This document shows, piece by piece, positions 1 to 20,254 of a stretch of 20,269 nt of DNA (the stretch's first letter is position 1; each line of letters begins with the position of its first letter). The stretch is taken from the sequence record NC_074633.1; one strand, written 5' to 3'. The translations under genes were made by a program, and so were the position numbers. Under the pieces are notes generated by a model. That model did no database searches. It saw only the letters and a list, made by a program, of their open reading frames with translations, and was not told the DNA's origin.

Positions 1-55
1 GTGTAGGCGATTGCGGTGGAAGTTGTAACGTTTAAAATTGACGAAAACTTGTTGG
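1..55 (+). repeat. Left inverted terminal repeat (55 bp perfect)
   Basis: 1-55 is the exact reverse complement of 20215-20269; the first mismatch is at position 56. Confidence 0.97.
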
Positions 56-192
56 TACTTCTAGATTTTTATGCTATAAATCATAGGCTTAGTAGGAGTG
101 AAGTAATCCGCAAGGCAATAGAAAAACTAGTTCAAGACGAAATAAACAAAGAAATAGTGCATAAAGCTAAGGTAGAGAAGTTTAAGCTTTAA
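16..192 (+). CDS. Ribbon-helix-helix transcription regulator, 58 aa (absent from ORF track)
   Basis: Manual translation from GTG16: [58 protein letters not shown]. It has the RHH beta-strand (VVTFKI) and the [10 protein letters not shown] helix-2 signature. Confidence 0.88.
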
Positions 193-3382: not shown

Positions 3383-4014
3383 GAAAATTGGTTTACGAAA
3401 ATAGGATTAAGGAAAGCTTCAAAAAGCTTTATCCGGAGGATACGCTTTATCCGTCAGAAATTTGTCATTGTCTGAGGCGTTCAATTTTAGCAAGAAGAAT
3501 TGAACATATAAAAAATCTTACAAGTGAAGTTTTAGATTATGGATTAGCGATACATGAAGATGTCGAAACGTATTTTAAAGAAAAGTTAGGTTGCGAAACT
3601 GAAAAAGCAATTGAATATGAGATTGAAGGCGTAAAAATTTCAGCAAGAGTTGATTTATTGTGCGGAAGTGACCTTCTGGAGCTTAAGACGGTTTCGCATT
3701 TTATTCGTCAGCCTTACCAAGATCACATTGTTCAAGTTTCACTTTATCATCATATACTGTCGCAACTTGGCTATAAAATTGATAATGTTTACATTATTTA
3801 CATTAATAGGCAAAATTATGACGTTCAAGAATTTAAAATTCAAAAAGATCAACTTGAACAAGGATTGAAAAGCGCTATCGACTTCATTAAAAATTACAAA
3901 AAATACAAAGACGAGCAGAACATATTCAAAATCCCGACTGGCGATTCAACATTTTGTAAAAATTGCGAATTTAAGAACATTTGCTATGGATCTTTGGACG
4001 TTTTTTTAAAATGA
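3379..4014 (+). CDS. cas4: Stand-alone Cas4-like (RecB-family) nuclease (SIRV2 gp19-like)
   Basis: YPSEICHC, H...RVD...ELKT, QxxxY and C-terminal CKNC...C Fe-S ligands. The GTG start overlaps the upstream TGA (GTGA at 3379-3382). Confidence 0.9.
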   Translation: MRKLVYENRIKESFKKLYPEDTLYPSEICHCLRRSILARRIEHIKNLTSEVLDYGLAIHEDVETYFKEKLGCETEKAIEYEIEGVKISARVDLLCGSDLLELKTVSHFIRQPYQDHIVQVSLYHHILSQLGYKIDNVYIIYINRQNYDVQEFKIQKDQLEQGLKSAIDFIKNYKKYKDEQNIFKIPTGDSTFCKNCEFKNICYGSLDVFLK

Positions 4015-4082
4015 ATGTATAATTCTCTAATTCATCCCCGGGGTGCTATGCTTATAATCTATTTGTTATTAACTATTTTATT

Positions 4083-4409
4083 ATGAAGAATAAGTTTGAA
4101 GATTGGAATAAATATAGATCTGACGTCAATAAGATTATCGTTGAGTATTTTAACAAAGTCGGCATAATGGCGACAACTAGAGCTTTATATTTCTCATTTG
4201 CACAAAAAATATTGGCAATTGTTAAAAAACATCAAGATGGAAGTCTTATTAATAAATTGATTGAAGGAAATATACAATATTTTGTGACTGCATTTGATGC
4301 AAATGAAAAAGTATTGCGTGATATTGTAAAAATTATAATTTTAGCTAAAATTGAGAAAATGGATCCTGATGATATATTGGAAGAAGTTTTGACACAAAAA
4401 GCTAACTAA
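4083..4409 (+). CDS. N-terminally truncated paralog of the major capsid protein (SIRV2-type four-helix bundle)
   Basis: Gap-free manual alignment to the neighbouring MCP: RALYFSFAQK vs RAIYQGYGLK and YFVTAFDANEKVL vs YYVSAFGANPQIL. Confidence 0.75.
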   Translation: MKNKFEDWNKYRSDVNKIIVEYFNKVGIMATTRALYFSFAQKILAIVKKHQDGSLINKLIEGNIQYFVTAFDANEKVLRDIVKIIILAKIEKMDPDDILEEVLTQKAN

Positions 4410-4410
4410 T

Positions 4411-4460
4411 CATATACAAAATATTATGTATATGGATTTTTTGCATTGAATTTTTATAAG
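4411..4460 (+). promoter_or_regulatory. MCP promoter: palindrome CATATACA-N8-TGTATATG, GCATTGAATTT box and TATA (TTATAAG)
   Basis: 8-bp inverted repeat at 4411-4418/4427-4434 with AATATT in the spacer; box at 4443-4453; TATA at 4454-4460; ATG at 4491. Confidence 0.65.
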
Positions 4461-4490
4461 CTATTAATTCTAATATCTAATTGACAAAAA

Positions 4491-4895
4491 ATGGCGAAAG
4501 GACACACACCAAGAAGTTATTCGCAAAGGTATGGTAAATGGAATGCAAAATTCACCGCATTTTCAAATCCAACTGTTGCCAGCACAATCCTAACTAATGT
4601 TGCACCGACCGCGCAAGAGAACTTCCAGACTAACGTACCTAGATTTACGTCAGTCAATGAGCAAGTTTCGGCGGTATTGACTCAGTACGGCGTGACTGGT
4701 CCTTCTAGAGCAATTTACCAAGGCTATGGTCTAAAGGTTGCGAGAGCGCTTAACAGGATTGGCGCTGGTCCCGCTCTAACGAATATGGTCGCTGGCTTAA
4801 AGGCTTATTACGTTTCAGCGTTTGGCGCTAATCCACAAATTTTAGATGCTGTGACTAACATAATCCTAGGATCTCCTAACGGATACGTAAGCTAA
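4491..4895 (+). CDS. Major capsid protein (rudivirus 134-aa DNA-binding coat protein)
   Basis: MAKGHTPRSYSQRYGKWNAKF...GYVS is highly similar to SIRV1/2 ORF134 and has the same length. Confidence 0.97.
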   Translation: MAKGHTPRSYSQRYGKWNAKFTAFSNPTVASTILTNVAPTAQENFQTNVPRFTSVNEQVSAVLTQYGVTGPSRAIYQGYGLKVARALNRIGAGPALTNMVAGLKAYYVSAFGANPQILDAVTNIILGSPNGYVS

Positions 4896-4915
4896 CCTTA
4901 AAAGCTAATTTTCAA

Positions 4916-4922
4916 TTTTTTT
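4916..4922 (+). terminator. Oligo-T terminator after MCP
   Basis: T7 run about 20 nt after the stop. Confidence 0.6.
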
Positions 4923-4943
4923 ATCTTTTCCTACTTCTTATTT

Positions 4944-4955
4944 TGCTTAAAAATG
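4944..4955 (+). promoter_or_regulatory. Promoter core TGCTTAAAAATG
   Basis: Identical 12-mer at 17155-17166; in both cases TTAAAA starts exactly 29 nt before the ATG. Confidence 0.65.
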
Positions 4956-4975
4956 TAATCTTTTAGTTCTCAATC

Positions 4976-5200
4976 ATGTTTGAGGAATATTTAAGACAAA
5001 AAGGTTTCGAACCCCATCATATTTCAATTCTTAAAGATTTCTTGATTGAAATAAAAGAGGCATTAGGTATAAATGCTAGGAATTATGAATTAGACGACGT
5101 CATAAATTCTATTGTTGAATATTTTGCGACAACATATATGCTAAGAAGAGAAGATCTTTTCCAATTAATAAATGGAGCAATTGAGGACGGTGTTGTGTAA
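4976..5200 (+). CDS. Hypothetical alpha-helical protein, 74 aa
   Basis: Has its own TATA box and abuts the glycosyltransferase start (TAAATG). Confidence 0.75.
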   Translation: MFEEYLRQKGFEPHHISILKDFLIEIKEALGINARNYELDDVINSIVEYFATTYMLRREDLFQLINGAIEDGVV

Positions 5201-10317: not shown

Positions 10318-10362
10318 GCCACATCTGTGTAATATTTGCATTTTCAAACCTTTTATTGCTCA

Positions 10363-10408
10363 ATATTCAACAGTAATATTCATAATATTCATTATATGCA
10401 TATTAAGC
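10363..10408 (+). repeat. 27-bp element (copy 2) plus ATATGCATAT palindrome in a divergent promoter region
   Basis: 10363-10389 is identical to 1987-2013; 10394-10408 is the exact reverse complement of 17107-17121. Confidence 0.92.
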
Positions 10409-16027: not shown

Positions 16028-17107
16028 ATGGCCTACGTAAACAAATATTCCATAATTAGCTCATCTGCATGGAATCAAATTGTACAAAATGCGCAACTAA
16101 TTTACAATATTTGGCAACAAGTCGTGAGCGCAATTCAACAACTTACAAATATAAATGCACAAGTAAATTATTCAAATTATCAAACACAACAACAAAATGT
16201 AGCGAATATAATAAGTGGTCTTTCCAGGTATTTGTCCTATCCAACAATAAAAACTCCTACTCCAAATATTCTAACTGCAAGCCCTGGCATGATATTAACT
16301 GCCGACATGATGAATAAAATGGTAAATGCAATACAAAAATTGTATAATTCAATAATGCCAACGCCTGCACCACAAATTTCAGAGGTTTTTGGCGGAGATA
16401 TTGTAACCTCAGATCATTGGAATAAAATCGTTAAAGCAATAAATGAATTACAAAATGCATTTGAAATAATATTTTTACCAGTACCCACACTAGGCGGTCC
16501 CATCATAGGCGGACCAATAATATTACCGCCAGAAAGTTTTTCATTCGATTTAATATCACCATATGTGATTATACCGTTTACACCTAGTTTTGGTATTCAA
16601 GTTAAAGAATATTTAATAGATCTCTTTGTTAAAAATCATATTTTATATTTGATTGCGGGATATCCAGAACCTGCAATAAATACAAAATATACTTTCTCTG
16701 GATCAGAAAAAATAGGCAATATCTTTGCATATGGTTACAATGTAACATTTTCACTGATTGAAAGCGTAAAAATACAGGATATATATCTATATGGAGATTA
16801 CAATAATGTAAACCCGGCATACAATTCAAAAATAGGAAACCTATTAATGATAGGCGATAATAATGTAATAACGGCATCTAATAGTGCAACAATTGTAAAT
16901 GTAACAATAATAGGAAATAACGACACTGTAACTACAAATGATAACTCAGTAATTCAAAATCTTACCGTATGCGGTCAAGGAAATTTAATCTCAGGATCTG
17001 GTATTGTAAATCTCTATTTATGTAATCCTGACAATACTATCGGAAGTGGTGTGCAAAATATAATAACAAGTTCTCCACTATGCCAAGTTGTCTGCGGTTC
17101 AGGTTAG
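16028..17107 (+). CDS. Putative virion spike/adhesin with N-terminal WN-helix repeats and a C-terminal beta-helix
   Basis: Three [IVL]-[ST]-x3-(W/M)N-x2-V motifs; five exact 20-aa I-x-N/D...G-x-N repeats starting at 16712; coupled to the fibre gene. Confidence 0.72.
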   Translation: MAYVNKYSIISSSAWNQIVQNAQLIYNIWQQVVSAIQQLTNINAQVNYSNYQTQQQNVANIISGLSRYLSYPTIKTPTPNILTASPGMILTADMMNKMVNAIQKLYNSIMPTPAPQISEVFGGDIVTSDHWNKIVKAINELQNAFEIIFLPVPTLGGPIIGGPIILPPESFSFDLISPYVIIPFTPSFGIQVKEYLIDLFVKNHILYLIAGYPEPAINTKYTFSGSEKIGNIFAYGYNVTFSLIESVKIQDIYLYGDYNNVNPAYNSKIGNLLMIGDNNVITASNSATIVNVTIIGNNDTVTTNDNSVIQNLTVCGQGNLISGSGIVNLYLCNPDNTIGSGVQNIITSSPLCQVVCGSG

Positions 17108-17166
17108 CTTAATATGCATATGTTTAATATTTGGAATATTACAATTGCGCATTCTGCTTAAAAATG
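17107..17166. promoter_or_regulatory. Inverted copy of the AATATT element plus TGCTTAAAAATG core upstream of the methyltransferase operon
   Basis: 17107-17147 matches the reverse complement of 10368-10408 at 34/41 positions; TATA core at 17155-17166. Confidence 0.7.
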
Positions 17167-18255: not shown

Positions 18256-19311
18256 GTGATAATCTATTACGTTTACCCCATGCATCATGACGTTAGCTTC
18301 AAATTTGTCGCACAAGAGCATATCAAAATGCTAAGAAGCAAATATACTGTCTATGACATTCCAGAGCTTAACTTTTATCAGTTTACACCATACGGGCGCC
18401 CACTGACATTTATCCACCCACTTTTTTACGGTATGTTGAATTGGACCGACATACAGTGGTCATTTTTCAAAATGTACAGATCGAAAGTGTCAAAAATTGT
18501 TGGCGTTGAAGTTGCGGACAGTGACAGAATTTCAGAAAAGTTCATTGAGATTGCAAACTTATGGGCTGACGCACTTGTCGTCAACTCTAAGTGGTCTTAT
18601 GATGCTTATATAAATTCAGGGCTCAAAATTCTAATCCATATTGTACCACATAATTACGATCCAAGACTTGAAGCCCCAGATGATCAATTAAAAGTTTCGC
18701 CAGAAATCAAAAAAATTGAAGAGATAAAGAAAGACAAAAAGATAAAGATCATCTTATTCTTTTCCTGGCATAGCGGTTACAGGAAAGGTGACGATTTATT
18801 TCAGAAGATAGCAAGACAAATACAAAAAGAGAGAGATGACGTTTACTTTATTGTAAAAAGCGCAACACCAAGACAAGATTTGGCAGACTTGAGGCTTTTC
18901 AACATCACTGGCGTAATTCCGTTTGACGATATCGTAAAGCTATACAGAATTTCTGACCTTCTGCTTTTGCCGTCAAGGGGTGGCTCATTTGAACTTAACG
19001 GTCTTGAGGCTTTAGTTAGTGGCATACCAGTTATAGCATCAGATGAAGGACCTTGGACTGAATATTTCCCACCGACATTAAGGCATTTTCTAGCTAAAAC
19101 TGTAAACCATCCAATCGTCCTGCCCAATAATCCAATTCATATCGGTCGTGGAGTAGAAATTTCAGTTGATGACGCAGTAGATAAAGCACTCAAAATACTG
19201 GATAACGTGGAAGAAGAAAAAGCAAAAGTGAGAGATGAAATTGAGTTTTTCCGCAATAACTACAGTTTTGAAGTAGTAAAAAAGAAATTACTTAAGGTTG
19301 TTGAGAATTGA
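18256..19311 (+). CDS. GT-B fold glycosyltransferase (GT4-like)
   Basis: YYVYPMHHDVSFKFVA N-terminus typical of rudiviral GTs; RKGDD and PSRGGSFELNGLEALVSGIPVI. GTG18256 chosen as start because it directly follows the upstream TGA. Confidence 0.92.
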   Translation: MIIYYVYPMHHDVSFKFVAQEHIKMLRSKYTVYDIPELNFYQFTPYGRPLTFIHPLFYGMLNWTDIQWSFFKMYRSKVSKIVGVEVADSDRISEKFIEIANLWADALVVNSKWSYDAYINSGLKILIHIVPHNYDPRLEAPDDQLKVSPEIKKIEEIKKDKKIKIILFFSWHSGYRKGDDLFQKIARQIQKERDDVYFIVKSATPRQDLADLRLFNITGVIPFDDIVKLYRISDLLLLPSRGGSFELNGLEALVSGIPVIASDEGPWTEYFPPTLRHFLAKTVNHPIVLPNNPIHIGRGVEISVDDAVDKALKILDNVEEEKAKVRDEIEFFRNNYSFEVVKKKLLKVVEN

Positions 19312-20136
19312 CTCTGCGTACTTTCTGATAATTCTTGTGTTCATCCTCAATGCTGACGCAGTAACCCCACATTTTTTGTCAATATCTGGTTGAGTTATTG
19401 TATAACCGTCATTCTTTGCAAGATAATACAAAATTGTGCATGCAACAACTTTTGGACTTCTGCCAGAGAAAATGCCAGATTTCTCAATCTCTTTTGAAAA
19501 GTTAAGCGCTTTTTCTATTAATTCAATTGGCAATCCCAATCGCAAACCGCACTCTTTTACAAAATCTTCAACTGCAAAATTTGGTATCTTCTCATCAAAA
19601 TACTTTAACACCTCAAAATAAGCGCTGGTAAATTGTTTTGGCGAAATCTTGTATATCTCCCAAACTTTTTCGACATATTCATCAAACGGCATTAAAATTC
19701 TCAGTTTACGATACGCAATATAGATAGAAACTAAAACAACAATTTCATGACCTAGATATCTTAAATGTTTATTTCCCCACAACTTCTGCAAAATCCTACT
19801 GGCTTCTTGCCTTATGGCGTCATTTCCACCAATTTTTTGAACTGCAGTTACTAAAAATCTTAAAGCTTCCAACAAAGGCTTACTTTCTGCTGAATAAAGA
19901 TTTGAAAGCCTGATGTTTTTCGGTTTTATACCGATAGTTGGCAAAAATCCTGAATTGATGATAACACTTGGATTTATTGGAAAAGCTCTTGCCCTTTCCA
20001 TAAATTGCTCGGCGTTATAAGCTCTCCAGTCCATGCCCTGGTCTACAACTCTATCTTCTAAAACTTCGCCAGTTTCAGTACAGATGAACTCACCTCTTTC
20101 ACTATCAAATACAATTTTGTCTGGTGCGCAACTCAT
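19288..20136 (-). CDS. tfb: Virus-encoded transcription initiation factor B (TFB/TFIIB) homolog, full length and divergent
   Basis: CAPDKIVFDSERGEFICTETGEVLEDRVVDQGMDWRAY mirrors the Sulfolobales TFB ribbon/B-reader; two cyclin repeats (SIYIAYRK; SGRSPKVVACTILY...TQPDI...GVT). Confidence 0.93.
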   Translation of the reverse strand: MSCAPDKIVFDSERGEFICTETGEVLEDRVVDQGMDWRAYNAEQFMERARAFPINPSVIINSGFLPTIGIKPKNIRLSNLYSAESKPLLEALRFLVTAVQKIGGNDAIRQEASRILQKLWGNKHLRYLGHEIVVLVSIYIAYRKLRILMPFDEYVEKVWEIYKISPKQFTSAYFEVLKYFDEKIPNFAVEDFVKECGLRLGLPIELIEKALNFSKEIEKSGIFSGRSPKVVACTILYYLAKNDGYTITQPDIDKKCGVTASALRMNTRIIRKYAESILNNLK

Positions 20137-20254
20137 ATGTGAACATCAAATTGATTACATTTTTATTTCTTGCTATAGCCGATTGCATTTTTATTGCATA
20201 TACATCAAGTCGTTCCAACAAGTTTTCGTCAATTTTAAACGTTACAACTTCCAC
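20105..20254 (-). pseudogene. Truncated or chimeric copy of the terminal RHH gene (49-aa ORF)
   Basis: Manual translation: [49 protein letters not shown]. The first 13 aa are identical to 16..192, similarity continues to YAIK, and the SRSEVIR helix is lost. Confidence 0.65.

Follow-up and report, generated by a model that had tools for sequence, protein, structure and literature searches.

RNA polymerase (RNAP) genes are absent from all archaeal viruses sequenced so far (PMC9501531), and the most direct candidate for redirecting host transcription is a virus-borne factor that recruits the polymerase as well as reading the promoter. The window analyzed here, the complete 20,269-nt genome of Metallosphaera rod-shaped virus 1 (MRV1), carries a gene, gp27, that raises this possibility and with it a more specific question: can its product still dock on the host machinery, and what, if anything, does it read upstream of the TATA box? 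Pilotto and Werner 2022 already ask whether this "vTFB" redirects transcription (PMC9501531). An earlier note on this DNA had supposed that the gene might already be annotated in related viruses; in fact gp27 itself is labelled "putative transcription initiation factor B" in GenBank. It is therefore a transcription factor B (TFB) homolog of MRV1 that was annotated before this analysis, and neither the gene nor the idea of promoter redirection is new to the literature (Baquero 2020; Pilotto and Werner 2022). Like the earlier note, which knew of no functional study, our literature search found no functional or biochemical work on vTFB, and a search for transcriptomes of the rudivirus SSRV1 returned unrelated papers only, with no expression data. 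An RNAP subunit gene was sought among the 27 annotated genes of MRV1, and none was found.

Identity, distribution and selection

The gp27 open reading frame starts with ATG, and its end coordinate counts the stop codon (Table 1). The product matches the Pfam families Zn_Ribbon_TF (PF08271; residues 6-39, 34.2 bits, cut-off 29) and TFIIB repeat (PF00382; residues 190-265, 30.8 bits, cut-off 23.6), and its residues 5-274 align to human TFIIB in a PDB match (E=6e-15) that goes far beyond chance. TFIIB/TFB proteins were the only significant matches in Pfam, NCBIfam, PDB and Foldseek, and the PHROGs family of gp27, phrog_20431, is unannotated. At its 3' end, the gene overlaps the convergent glycosyltransferase gene gp26 by 24 nt.

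Table 1. Coordinates of the vTFB gene, its encoded regions and its promoter in the MRV1 window
Feature	Residues	Position	Strand	Remarks
Window, complete MRV1 genome				MN876843
vTFB CDS, MRV1 gp27		19288..20136	(-)	282 aa + stop; ORF list, GenBank, Pfam/NCBIfam/PDB matches
B-ribbon	1-35	20032..20136	(-)	Two Cys, C3 and C19; Pfam PF08271
B-reader region	36-61	19954..20031	(-)	Universal D/E-W-R and R50 kept
B-linker remnant	62-84	19885..19953	(-)	20-residue deletion vs host TFB1
Cyclin-like repeat 1	85-184	19585..19884	(-)	AF2, Foldseek; highly divergent
Cyclin-like repeat 2 incl. C-terminal HTH	185-275	19312..19584	(-)	Pfam PF00382, AF2
HTH segment TQPDIDKKCGVTASALRMNT	248-267	19336..19395	(-)	A260-S261-A262 in place of E-V-T; R264 kept
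vTFB-gene core promoter CAAGAAATAAAAATGTA		20156..20172	(-)	Conserved
TATA-like box AATAAAAA		20160-20167	(-)	31 nt upstream of vTFB ATG; placed by EM alignment

The gene occupies the same syntenic position and strand in MRV1, ARV2, SSRV1 and ARV3, four Italian rudiviruses of the genus Hoswirudivirus, and even the rudivirus with the smallest genome (20.3 kb) has retained it. A tblastn search with the gp27 protein gave zero matches in SIRV1, SIRV2 and ARV1, which bears out the statement in the earlier note that SIRV1/2 have no such gene. The orthologs of ARV2, SSRV1 and ARV3 (77, 66 and 47% identity to gp27, respectively) share with it the promoter block CAAGnnATAAAAATGTA, invariant in all four viruses, the B-linker deletion and the loss of the E-V-T residues of the recognition helix, but differ from gp27 and from one another in the residues that this helix carries instead. 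In ARV2 and SSRV1, vTFB is the first gene of a block of three, the other two encoding an amino-acid transporter and a 207-aa protein; MRV1 and ARV3 lack both. The SSRV1 ortholog is gp30, and the host of that virus is S. solfataricus. TFB genes are also carried by other archaeal mobile elements, i.e., the Sulfolobales viruses YNP1/YNP2 and Asgard viruses and mobile elements. However, these TFBs form a separate lineage (25-26% identity) that groups with the metagenomic sequences P0010/P0011, and they lack the first ribbon Cys, bear a C-terminal Cys-rich extension and have a near-canonical helix.

Selection on vTFB is purifying, both for the whole gene (dN/dS 0.16-0.25) and in all of its regions, the two cyclin repeats included (omega 0.10-0.30); thus, the core is in use, and not the ribbon alone. 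These values, together with the conserved promoter, exclude a decaying pseudogene or passenger. The plain TFB annotation, the retained helix Arg and the overall fold could instead suggest an ordinary extra TFB copy that provides more initiation factor with a host-like promoter preference. Against it stand a stem branch of ~2.4 substitutions per site, a score of 107.3 bits under the 384-bit cut-off of the NCBIfam TFB model PRK00423, a TFIIB-repeat Pfam score of 31 bits as compared with 149 bits (both repeats) in host TFB1, and the absence of the most conserved BRE-reading residues. Of the explanations considered here, we give an ordinary copy or passenger gene the lowest probability.

A kept ribbon and a lost linker

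Host TFB1 and gp27 were compared region by region, each region being scored by the host-conserved columns that gp27 keeps. The B-ribbon is the best-conserved part of the protein (17 of 18 columns; 72% identity to M. javensis TFB1) and shows a lower dN than any other part of the gene. It is predicted to form strands at residues 8-11, 16-19 and 25-27 and contains exactly two Cys ("SCAPD...ICTET"; pattern xCCx in the alignment, vs four-Cys TFBs). Two Cys are likewise present in 66 of 68 Sulfolobales/Desulfurococcales TFBs. TFB1 of Metallosphaera, Acidianus and Saccharolobus has the same two-Cys ribbon and carries the helix GVTEVTVRNRYKEL; the statement in the earlier note that Sulfolobales TFB1 has such a ribbon therefore stands. 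In the B-reader, D36-W37-R38 and R50 are kept in every vTFB, at columns that are 85-94% conserved among 189 cellular TFB/TFIIBs, but lineage-specific residues are altered, with 5 of 15 host-conserved columns kept.

The B-linker was rightly described before as shorter than that of host TFB: 20 of the 43 host TFB1 positions are deleted, and a single one of 22 conserved columns is kept. A search of the AF2 model for a B-linker helix yielded none, only a three-residue helical turn (77-79) between helices 56-61 and 83-102, and the remnant is modelled with pLDDT <50. The earlier reading gave too little weight to this near-complete loss, which is the larger change. In Pyrococcus TFB and yeast TFIIB, promoter opening is reported to require the B-linker (Kostrewa et al. 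2009). The near-complete loss of this element therefore casts real doubt on whether vTFB can open DNA.

These observations bear on a competitive, dominant-negative inhibitor. Through its host-like ribbon, and possibly its TBP-binding core, such a vTFB would occupy RNAP or TBP-promoter complexes, fail to open DNA for want of a B-linker and shut down or throttle TFB1-dependent host transcription, with an outcome resembling that of the ATV RNAP inhibitor RIP. Consistent with this, no part of gp27 is nearly as well conserved as the ribbon and none as poorly as the linker, and the residues for BRE reading are gone. Furthermore, in vitro, a TFB construct reduced to the ribbon inhibits transcription because it competes for RNAP, and TFB3 and TFB1 are likewise rivals for the polymerase (Goetz 2007, PMC2246294). 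However, rudiviruses do not bring an RNAP with them, as far as the 27 MRV1 genes tell, so that global inhibition would also hit viral genes; the universal B-reader residues are retained; and the cyclin repeats and HTH, which a mere RNAP decoy should shed as TFB3 did, are all under purifying selection in vTFB. We regard an inhibitor as unlikely, but as the alternative to be taken most seriously. RIP itself (ORF145) is a crenarchaeal-virus protein that acts on the TFB-binding site of host RNAP (PMC9501531, PMC5123050); its fold is unrelated, and it imitates the B-linker and obstructs the DNA channel, whereas vTFB is a true TFB homolog without a B-linker.

Sulfolobales TFB3 offers a cellular parallel, since it is an alternative paralog that keeps the RNAP-binding ribbon, has no functional BRE-reading HTH and does without B-finger/linker (PMC2246294). 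This cellular, UV-induced protein is, however, so severely truncated that its core is abbreviated and its HTH entirely absent; vTFB has a complete two-repeat core and, in the model, an HTH fold, and so falls outside the TFB3-type profile. TFB3 already acts as an activator in Sulfolobales (PMC6101594, PMC6101591), and the host-like ribbon and degraded HTH of vTFB might by analogy point to a co-activator that joins TFB1 complexes in trans or remodels them, stimulating selected promoters instead of taking the place of TFB1. The full core and the B-reader residues, missing from TFB3, and the lack of clustering with any truncated TFB paralog in the tree argue against such a role, to which we assign a slim chance.

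Cyclin core, recognition helix and viral promoters

The core of gp27 is modelled with high confidence (pLDDT >90, AF2 monomer). It superposes on TBP/DNA-bound P. woesei TFBc (Foldseek; 1d3u_B, TM 0.78; 1ais_B, TM 0.77; rmsd ~3 A), and reaches a TM of only 0.43 against apo TFIIBc. Repeat 1 keeps 13 of 44 host-conserved columns and scores too low for Pfam in MRV1, although Pfam does pick it up in ARV3; its G-R motif (human G153/R154, a BREd contact) is Y-L in MRV1 according to the human TFIIB alignment. The helices of repeat 2 span residues 189-199, 204-220, 228-242, 249-256 and 260-281 in the AF2 model, the last two forming the HTH. DNA recognition by the TFB HTH has been described in general terms (PMC4581349).

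This HTH retains 4 of 19 host-conserved columns, and its recognition helix has GVTASALR where GVTEVTVR is canonical. The E, V, T and R of the canonical helix are conserved at 83, 83, 88 and 98%, respectively, in 189 cellular TFB/TFIIBs, in agreement with the earlier description of GVTEVT(V/I)RNRY as the archaeal norm. E-V-T is gone from all five vTFBs and differently so in each (ASA, DTA, GAG, DGA and VIG), and the adjacent Arg (R264 in gp27, human R286) is invariant. The ungapped alignment with human TFIIB maps the gp27 residues to V283, in the middle of E-V-T, and to R286. We take V283 and R286 to be BRE-contact positions, as reported by Lagrange (1998) and by Tsai and Sigler (2000). The claim that the DNA-recognition helix was rewritten thus holds for E-V-T but not for G257, V258 and R264, which are kept. 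Nor is the divergence specific to this helix, since every region but the B-ribbon has diverged. The HTH is nonetheless the least constrained region in the vTFB clade (43% pairwise identity, highest dN).

An altered helix might read a distinct viral upstream element, e.g., T-rich or TGC before TTAAAAA boxes, and thereby define a temporal promoter class in the manner of a sigma factor. The promoters offer some hints of this. "TGC" lies directly upstream of the TATA box in 10 of 54 promoters of vTFB-bearing viruses vs 0 of 37 in viruses without the gene, and these promoters serve conserved core genes (orthologs of MRV1 gp03, gp11 and gp24). Likewise, two or fewer purines in seven at the BRE position were counted in 14 of 54 promoters of the former vs 1 of 37 in SIRV2 and ARV1 (p=0.003), but these counts are not phylogenetically independent, as the four vTFB-bearing viruses make up one genus and the 14 promoters represent ~5 orthologous families. 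The contrast was not significant between MRV1 and ARV1 alone (p=0.12), and ARV1, which is devoid of vTFB, has at least one pyrimidine-rich promoter. Since common ancestry confounds the promoter contrast, we do not treat it as evidence that vTFB has acquired a new specificity. For the motif AAAATGTAA, which lies downstream of TATA boxes, the window showed no enrichment (3 occurrences vs 1.16 expected; 11 of 100 shuffles reach 3).

Sigma-like reading is further weakened by the behavior of the helix. Upstream promoter sequences are conserved across the vTFB-bearing viruses, whereas the putative base-contacting residues differ in every vTFB and the HTH is the region under the least constraint; helix and promoters do not co-vary. 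A variable helix facing conserved viral promoters therefore favors relaxed or lost BRE reading over new specificity, and the proposed redirection of polymerase through a sigma-like switch becomes improbable. The companion claim, that the factor still docks on TBP and RNAP with BRE reading altered or lost, is partly supported by sequence and model: the kept ribbon, reader and core fold and the missing E-V-T fit it, although the new-specificity version of an altered reading has lost ground.

The explanation that we tentatively favor, with a confidence somewhat short of even, is that gp27 is a virus-encoded alternative general initiation factor, largely or wholly independent of the BRE, that drives viral TATA promoters. 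Its near-unchanged B-ribbon would dock on host RNAP, and the two remodelled cyclin repeats would still be seated on the TBP-TATA complex. With the base-reading residues of the BRE helix replaced by small, variable ones, the resulting preinitiation complexes might depend little or not at all on a purine-rich BRE. Viral TATA promoters could then be driven by gp27 independently of host TFB1 and in competition with it, and its targets may include a viral promoter class that is pyrimidine-rich upstream. With so little of the B-linker left, the opening of DNA would have to rely on TFE, high temperature and the AT-rich viral DNA. Full TFB architecture, the kept ribbon and reader, the modelled core, E-V-T loss beside an invariant Arg, purifying selection, conserved promoter and synteny, retention in so small a genome, the larger share of purine-poor promoters in vTFB-bearing viruses and the variable helix facing conserved promoters speak for this explanation; the essentially deleted B-linker, the reader score of 5/15, the change of repeat-1 G-R to Y-L, the confounding of that promoter contrast and the pyrimidine-rich promoter of ARV1 speak against it.

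Origin and significance

The favored explanation has gp27 derive from a TFB of the Sulfolobales/Desulfurococcales type. Sulfolobales TFB1 (e.g., Metallosphaera javensis, L029) shares with it the two-Cys ribbon, D/E-W-R and the reader Arg, two cyclin repeats, the C-terminal HTH and the helix Arg. The two proteins nonetheless have ~28% overall identity, and gp27 differs by 20 fewer B-linker residues, a 4-residue insertion in repeat 1, the replaced repeat-1 G-R and a helix reading GVTASALRMNT instead of GVTEVTVRNRY. Its best cellular matches (34% identity, E=2e-40) are short-linker chromosomal paralogs, probably of the TFB2 type, comprising second copies from Acidianus (L002-L004) and the metagenomic P0006, P0007 and P0014. 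Their B-linker is 10-12 residues below TFB1 length, but the linker helix region is still present. The Acidianus copies (GVTQVTIRNRY) and P0014 (GVTEVTIR) keep the canonical recognition helix, whereas that of P0006 (GITDYALR) and P0007 (QISEISIR) is divergent as well. That these nearest relatives come from other mobile elements was ruled out: the P0007 gene adjoins slaA and hjc, and its contig also bears a dCTP deaminase gene, in a chromosomal setting.

In the TFB phylogeny, a check suggested in the earlier note, the vTFBs fall beside these paralogs as their sister group in the best tree (support 88/92). AU tests leave the donor paralog ambiguous, since they reject neither a tree that joins vTFB to Sulfolobaceae TFB1 (p=0.14) nor one that joins it to the second copies of Acidianus (p=0.18). 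Thus, the sequences place the origin of vTFB within the Sulfolobales/Desulfurococcales TFB radiation and no more narrowly.

Like vTFB, the TFIIBs of giant viruses and ASFV and the sigma factors of phages are virus-encoded promoter-recognition or initiation factors, and the Foldseek matches of gp27 include mimivirus, marseillevirus and pithovirus TFIIBs (13-19% identity). Giant-virus TFIIBs, however, pair with virus-encoded RNAPs, of which MRV1 has none. Phage sigmas are bacterial, and their new promoter specificity has been demonstrated, whereas a specificity switch in vTFB is a proposal from sequence. MRV1 promoters fall into two classes, exemplified by gp11 and gp24 on the one hand and the terminal GAAAGATTTAAA promoter on the other. 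Host TFB1 might serve the purine-BRE (early/terminal) promoters, that of vTFB included, and a vTFB that is BRE-blind or tuned to T-rich/TGC elements might serve the second viral class. We rate such a division of labor as a low-probability outcome; if true, archaeal viruses would have their first known parallel to the sigma cascades of phages, and vTFB would be a naturally occurring TFB capable of initiation with no B-linker.

To conclude, with the gene and the general idea previously published, the value of these findings lies in a sharper hypothesis rather than in discovery. The residue-level picture of a factor with the ribbon kept, the B-linker deleted and the BRE-reading residues lost and evolving fast yields definite predictions where there had been a vague annotation. 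Judged from its sequence, gp27 is a plausible tool for the takeover of host transcription, and vTFB would be a test case provided by nature of whether a functional TFB can dispense with the B-linker.

Identity, distribution, and origin of the viral TFB

The complete genome of Metallosphaera rod-shaped virus 1 (MRV1; MN876843.1 / NC_074633), a member of the Rudiviridae (genus Hoswirudivirus) from Italy whose host is Metallosphaera sedula, is 100% identical to the 20,269-bp window. Its gp27 gene is convergent with the glycosyltransferase gene gp26, which it overlaps by 24 nt. Its start, 133 nt from the right end of the genome, lies slightly inward of the 80-nt terminal inverted repeat (TIR). The product matches the Pfam families Zn_Ribbon_TF (34.2 bits) and TFIIB repeat (one copy, 30.8 bits), aligns through residues 5-274 with human TFIIB (E=6e-15), and also matches P. 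furiosus and P. woesei TFB fragments; its score against the NCBIfam TFB model (107 bits) lies below the 384-bit cut-off. It belongs to phrog_20431 (E=6e-95), a family labeled 'unknown function' though its members are clear TFB homologs.

By tblastn, this viral TFB (vTFB) gene is present in 4 of ~21 distinct rudiviruses, namely MRV1, ARV2 (77% identity), SSRV1 (66%), and ARV3 (47%), all of them Italian and all Hoswirudivirus. The same search found no match in SIRV1 or SIRV2, as the earlier note had suggested, nor in ARV1, from the same site. An annotation in related rudiviruses, which that note had anticipated, exists in ARV2 record KP282675 ('Transcription initiation factor B'). Synteny and strand of the gene are conserved across the four viruses. 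In ARV2 and SSRV1 it is followed on the same strand by genes for an amino-acid transporter and a 207-aa protein, with operon-like gaps of ~21 nt and ~9 nt; MRV1 and ARV3 lack both genes.

An exhaustive phmmer search of 1.84 billion representatives returned 964 matches at E<=1e-3 and only 2 at E<=1e-30; the vTFB clade is tiny and very divergent. Our trees recover vTFBs as a monophyletic group (100/100) with a stem of ~2.4 substitutions per site, placed within the Sulfolobales/Desulfurococcales TFB radiation as sisters of short-linker chromosomal paralogs (88/92). This phylogeny supports the proposed capture from the host lineage. For the donor paralog, AU tests reject placement beside neither the Acidianus second copies (p=0.18) nor Sulfolobaceae TFB1 (p=0.14). 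One of the short-linker sister paralogs, the metagenomic copy P0007, is the closest cellular relative of the vTFBs, and its gene adjoins slaA, dCTP deaminase, and hjc. A long-linker TFB, P0008, and P0007 are encoded on two contigs, L074 and L075, of one metagenome (ERZ1684502), at similar coverage (185x and 195x), and probably constitute a TFB1/TFB2-type pair of one uncultured Sulfolobales-like genome. A separate, distant viral lineage occurs in the Sulfolobales viruses YNP1 and YNP2 (25-26% identity to vTFB), whose TFBs differ in having a C-terminal Cys-rich (Zn-ribbon-like) extension and group with metagenomic P0010 and P0011. Thus, Sulfolobales viruses have captured TFB at least twice. Neither ribbon position carries Cys in the YNP1/YNP2 proteins, and their recognition helix is near-canonical.

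The dN/dS values of vTFB (0.16-0.25, against 0.03-0.13 in five neighboring or core genes) are approximate, with dS ~1. The ribbon is the most constrained region (81% mean pairwise identity among vTFBs) and the HTH the least (43% identity, top dN in each of the three pairs, omega reaching 0.40). Together, these patterns indicate a gene that is functional over its full length and fast-evolving, the HTH fastest of all.

An unannotated ORF that spans the vTFB promoter and start codon matches PHROG transcriptional-repressor families; its residues 1-21 are 86% identical to gp01 and the remainder diverges. It looks like a TIR-derived degenerate gp01 copy. An AT-rich repeat lies upstream of gp07, again in the gap separating the divergent gp19 and gp20, and a third time upstream of gp24. 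Its GAATATTA motif occurs 8 times in the window against 1.75 expected (0/100 shuffles reach 8), and the repeat is likely an operator, serving either a viral or a host regulator.

Coordinates of vTFB and associated features
Feature	Genome	Coordinates	Strand	Description
MRV1_gp27	MRV1	19288-20136	minus	282-aa ATG-initiated ORF; last annotated gene; 'putative transcription initiation factor B'
gp01	MRV1	16-192		RHH-type 'putative transcriptional regulator'
Unannotated ORF	MRV1	20105-20254	minus	49 aa; begins within right TIR
AT-rich repeat	MRV1	1992-2028, 10351-10408, 17107-17164		GAATATTA / TAATATTC; three intergenic regions
vTFB, transporter, 207-aa protein	ARV2 (L076)	21879-24635	minus	
vTFB, transporter, 207-aa protein	SSRV1 (L077)	20000-22720	minus	
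TFB	YNP2 (L072)	3998-5020		
TFB	YNP1 (L073)	3998-5002		

Domain-by-domain divergence from host TFB

All sequence statements of the earlier note were correct on re-check. The two-Cys ribbon of gp27 (C3 and C19) recurs in the presumptive TFB1 of four Sulfolobales (Metallosphaera javensis, M. yellowstonensis, Acidianus hospitalis, and a Saccharolobus MAG), which reads 'CPPDK...IC[ST]ETGEV' and carries the canonical helix '...AGVTEVTVRNRYKEL'; the terminal HTH peptide TQPDIDKKCGVTASALRMNT corresponds to gp27 residues 248-267. Aligned to four-Cys TFBs, all five viral homologs (the four rudiviral proteins and metagenomic P0004) show the pattern xCCx, which is also found in 66/68 Sulfolobales/Desulfurococcales TFBs, a set collected using ribbon-derived patterns, versus only 18 in a diverse set of 121 representatives, where four Cys are present in 88.

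Alignment of the five vTFBs with 189 cellular TFB/TFIIBs defined 30 columns whose conservation among the cellular proteins is 80% or more. At least four vTFBs retain 19 of these, including both ribbon Cys, G-x-V, W37, R38, R50, G63, G225, P228, Y237, Q249, and R264, and a further 6 persist in one or more. Five are absent from all vTFBs; three of these are adjacent and make up the recognition-helix E-V-T, replaced in MRV1 by A260-S261-A262. Among universally conserved positions, the altered helix was thus borne out as the most conspicuous loss. In an ungapped alignment, S261 and R264 pair with human TFIIB V283 and R286, which we take to be BRE-contacting residues (attributed to Lagrange 1998; Tsai and Sigler 2000). 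In general, BRE reading takes place in the major groove, through the N-terminal end of HTH helix 3 (PMC4581349).

Divergence from host TFB1 extends beyond this helix. Among columns at least 90% conserved in 33 host-lineage TFB1-type proteins, those that four or more of the five vTFBs retain number 17/18 in the B-ribbon, 5/15 in the B-reader, 1/22 in the B-linker (where 20 of 43 positions are deleted), 13/44 and 7/26 in cyclin repeats 1 and 2, and 4/19 in the HTH. Pfam scores for gp27 and host TFB1 are 34 versus 42 bits for the ribbon and 31 (one repeat detected) versus 149 bits (both) for the TFIIB repeats. The biggest single change is therefore loss of the B-linker, which the earlier note had described as looking shorter than in host TFB and which is 20 residues shorter than that of TFB1, rather than the helix. 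That gp27 is an ordinary or redundant TFB is the least probable reading.

The AlphaFold2 model of gp27 (42-sequence alignment, mean pLDDT 81.9) has ribbon strands of moderate confidence (pLDDT ~77-78), two five-helix cyclin repeats (pLDDT >90), and no predicted linker helix, residues 29-79 being of low confidence. Its top Foldseek matches are exclusively TFIIB, TFB, and Brf proteins, and its core resembles DNA/TBP-bound P. woesei TFBc (1d3u_B, TM 0.78; 1ais_B, TM 0.77; rmsd ~3 A) far more than apo TFIIBc (TM 0.43).

Promoters and proposed mode of action

The four viruses share the vTFB promoter block CAAGnnATAAAAATGTA without variation; its TATA-like box lies 31 nt upstream of the ATG and is preceded by purine-rich sequence, as would fit transcription by host machinery. 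Alignment of 139 upstream regions from six rudiviruses on their TATA boxes distinguished class 1 promoters with a purine-rich BRE (GAAAGATTTAAA), on terminal small genes of viruses with and without vTFB alike, from class 2 promoters with pyrimidine-rich upstream sequence (e.g., TTTTGC|TTAAAAA|TGTAA), on orthologs of MRV1 gp03, gp11, gp21, and gp24. At least two promoter classes are visible across the window and loci L076-L080: a purine-rich BRE with GATTTAAA, common to SIRV2 also, and a pyrimidine-rich upstream region with CTTAAAAA-TGTAA on conserved core genes of Hoswirudivirus. SIRV2 middle promoters differ in having AAAATGTCAT after the TATA box.

Among 91 promoters with a TATA score of at least 5.5 (54 from vTFB-carrying viruses, 37 from SIRV2 and ARV1), at most two of the 7 nucleotides at the BRE position are purines in 14/54 versus 1/37 (Fisher p=0.003), and 'TGC' immediately precedes TATA in 10/54 versus 0/37. 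This contrast is suggestive and not independent evidence: all four viruses come from a single genus, and the 14 promoters represent ~5 orthologous families. For MRV1 versus ARV1 alone p=0.12, and ARV1 too has a pyrimidine-rich gp21-type promoter. Recognition of the T-rich/TGC element by gp27 as a true sigma-like switch is improbable: the helix positions read ASA, DTA, GAG, and VIG in the four viruses (DGA in P0004), while class 2 promoters stay conserved across those four. Loss or relaxation of base-specific reading fits this better than a new specificity.

The best-supported reading, still a tentative one, is that gp27 acts as an alternative initiation factor. It would dock on host RNAP via the ribbon and universal B-reader residues, and on TBP-TATA via its conserved fold. 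R143, K167, Y173, and K178 align with human TFIIB R169, K189, F195, and K200, presumably TBP contacts, which we treat as a lead only. Dependence on a purine-rich BRE would be gone, and gp27 could then serve viral TATA promoters independently of TFB1 and as its competitor. The chief argument against this alternative-factor reading is the missing B-linker, for which TFE, temperature, and the AT-rich DNA (35% GC) would need to make up. A dominant-negative competitor for RNAP or TBP, which the earlier note had also proposed, is somewhat unlikely, and a co-activator of the TFB3 type highly so.

Baquero et al. 2020 listed a transcription initiation factor among the genes exclusive to Italian rudiviruses, Pilotto and Werner 2022 (PMC9501531) called these proteins 'vTFB', and rudiviral TFBs are cited as precedent in Asgard-virus papers. 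Given these two studies and the GenBank annotation, the gene was already known and the promoter-redirection hypothesis already in print; our literature search found no functional or residue-level vTFB study. Our analysis adds a quantified per-domain picture in which the B-linker is nearly gone, the selection pattern, the specific loss of E-V-T with the Arg retained, and, from a fast-evolving helix facing conserved promoters, an argument for relaxed over new specificity. No archaeal virus is known to have its own RNA polymerase (PMC9501531). The vTFB gene will not surprise the specialist, yet it gives the takeover of host transcription by archaeal viruses a directly testable entry point.
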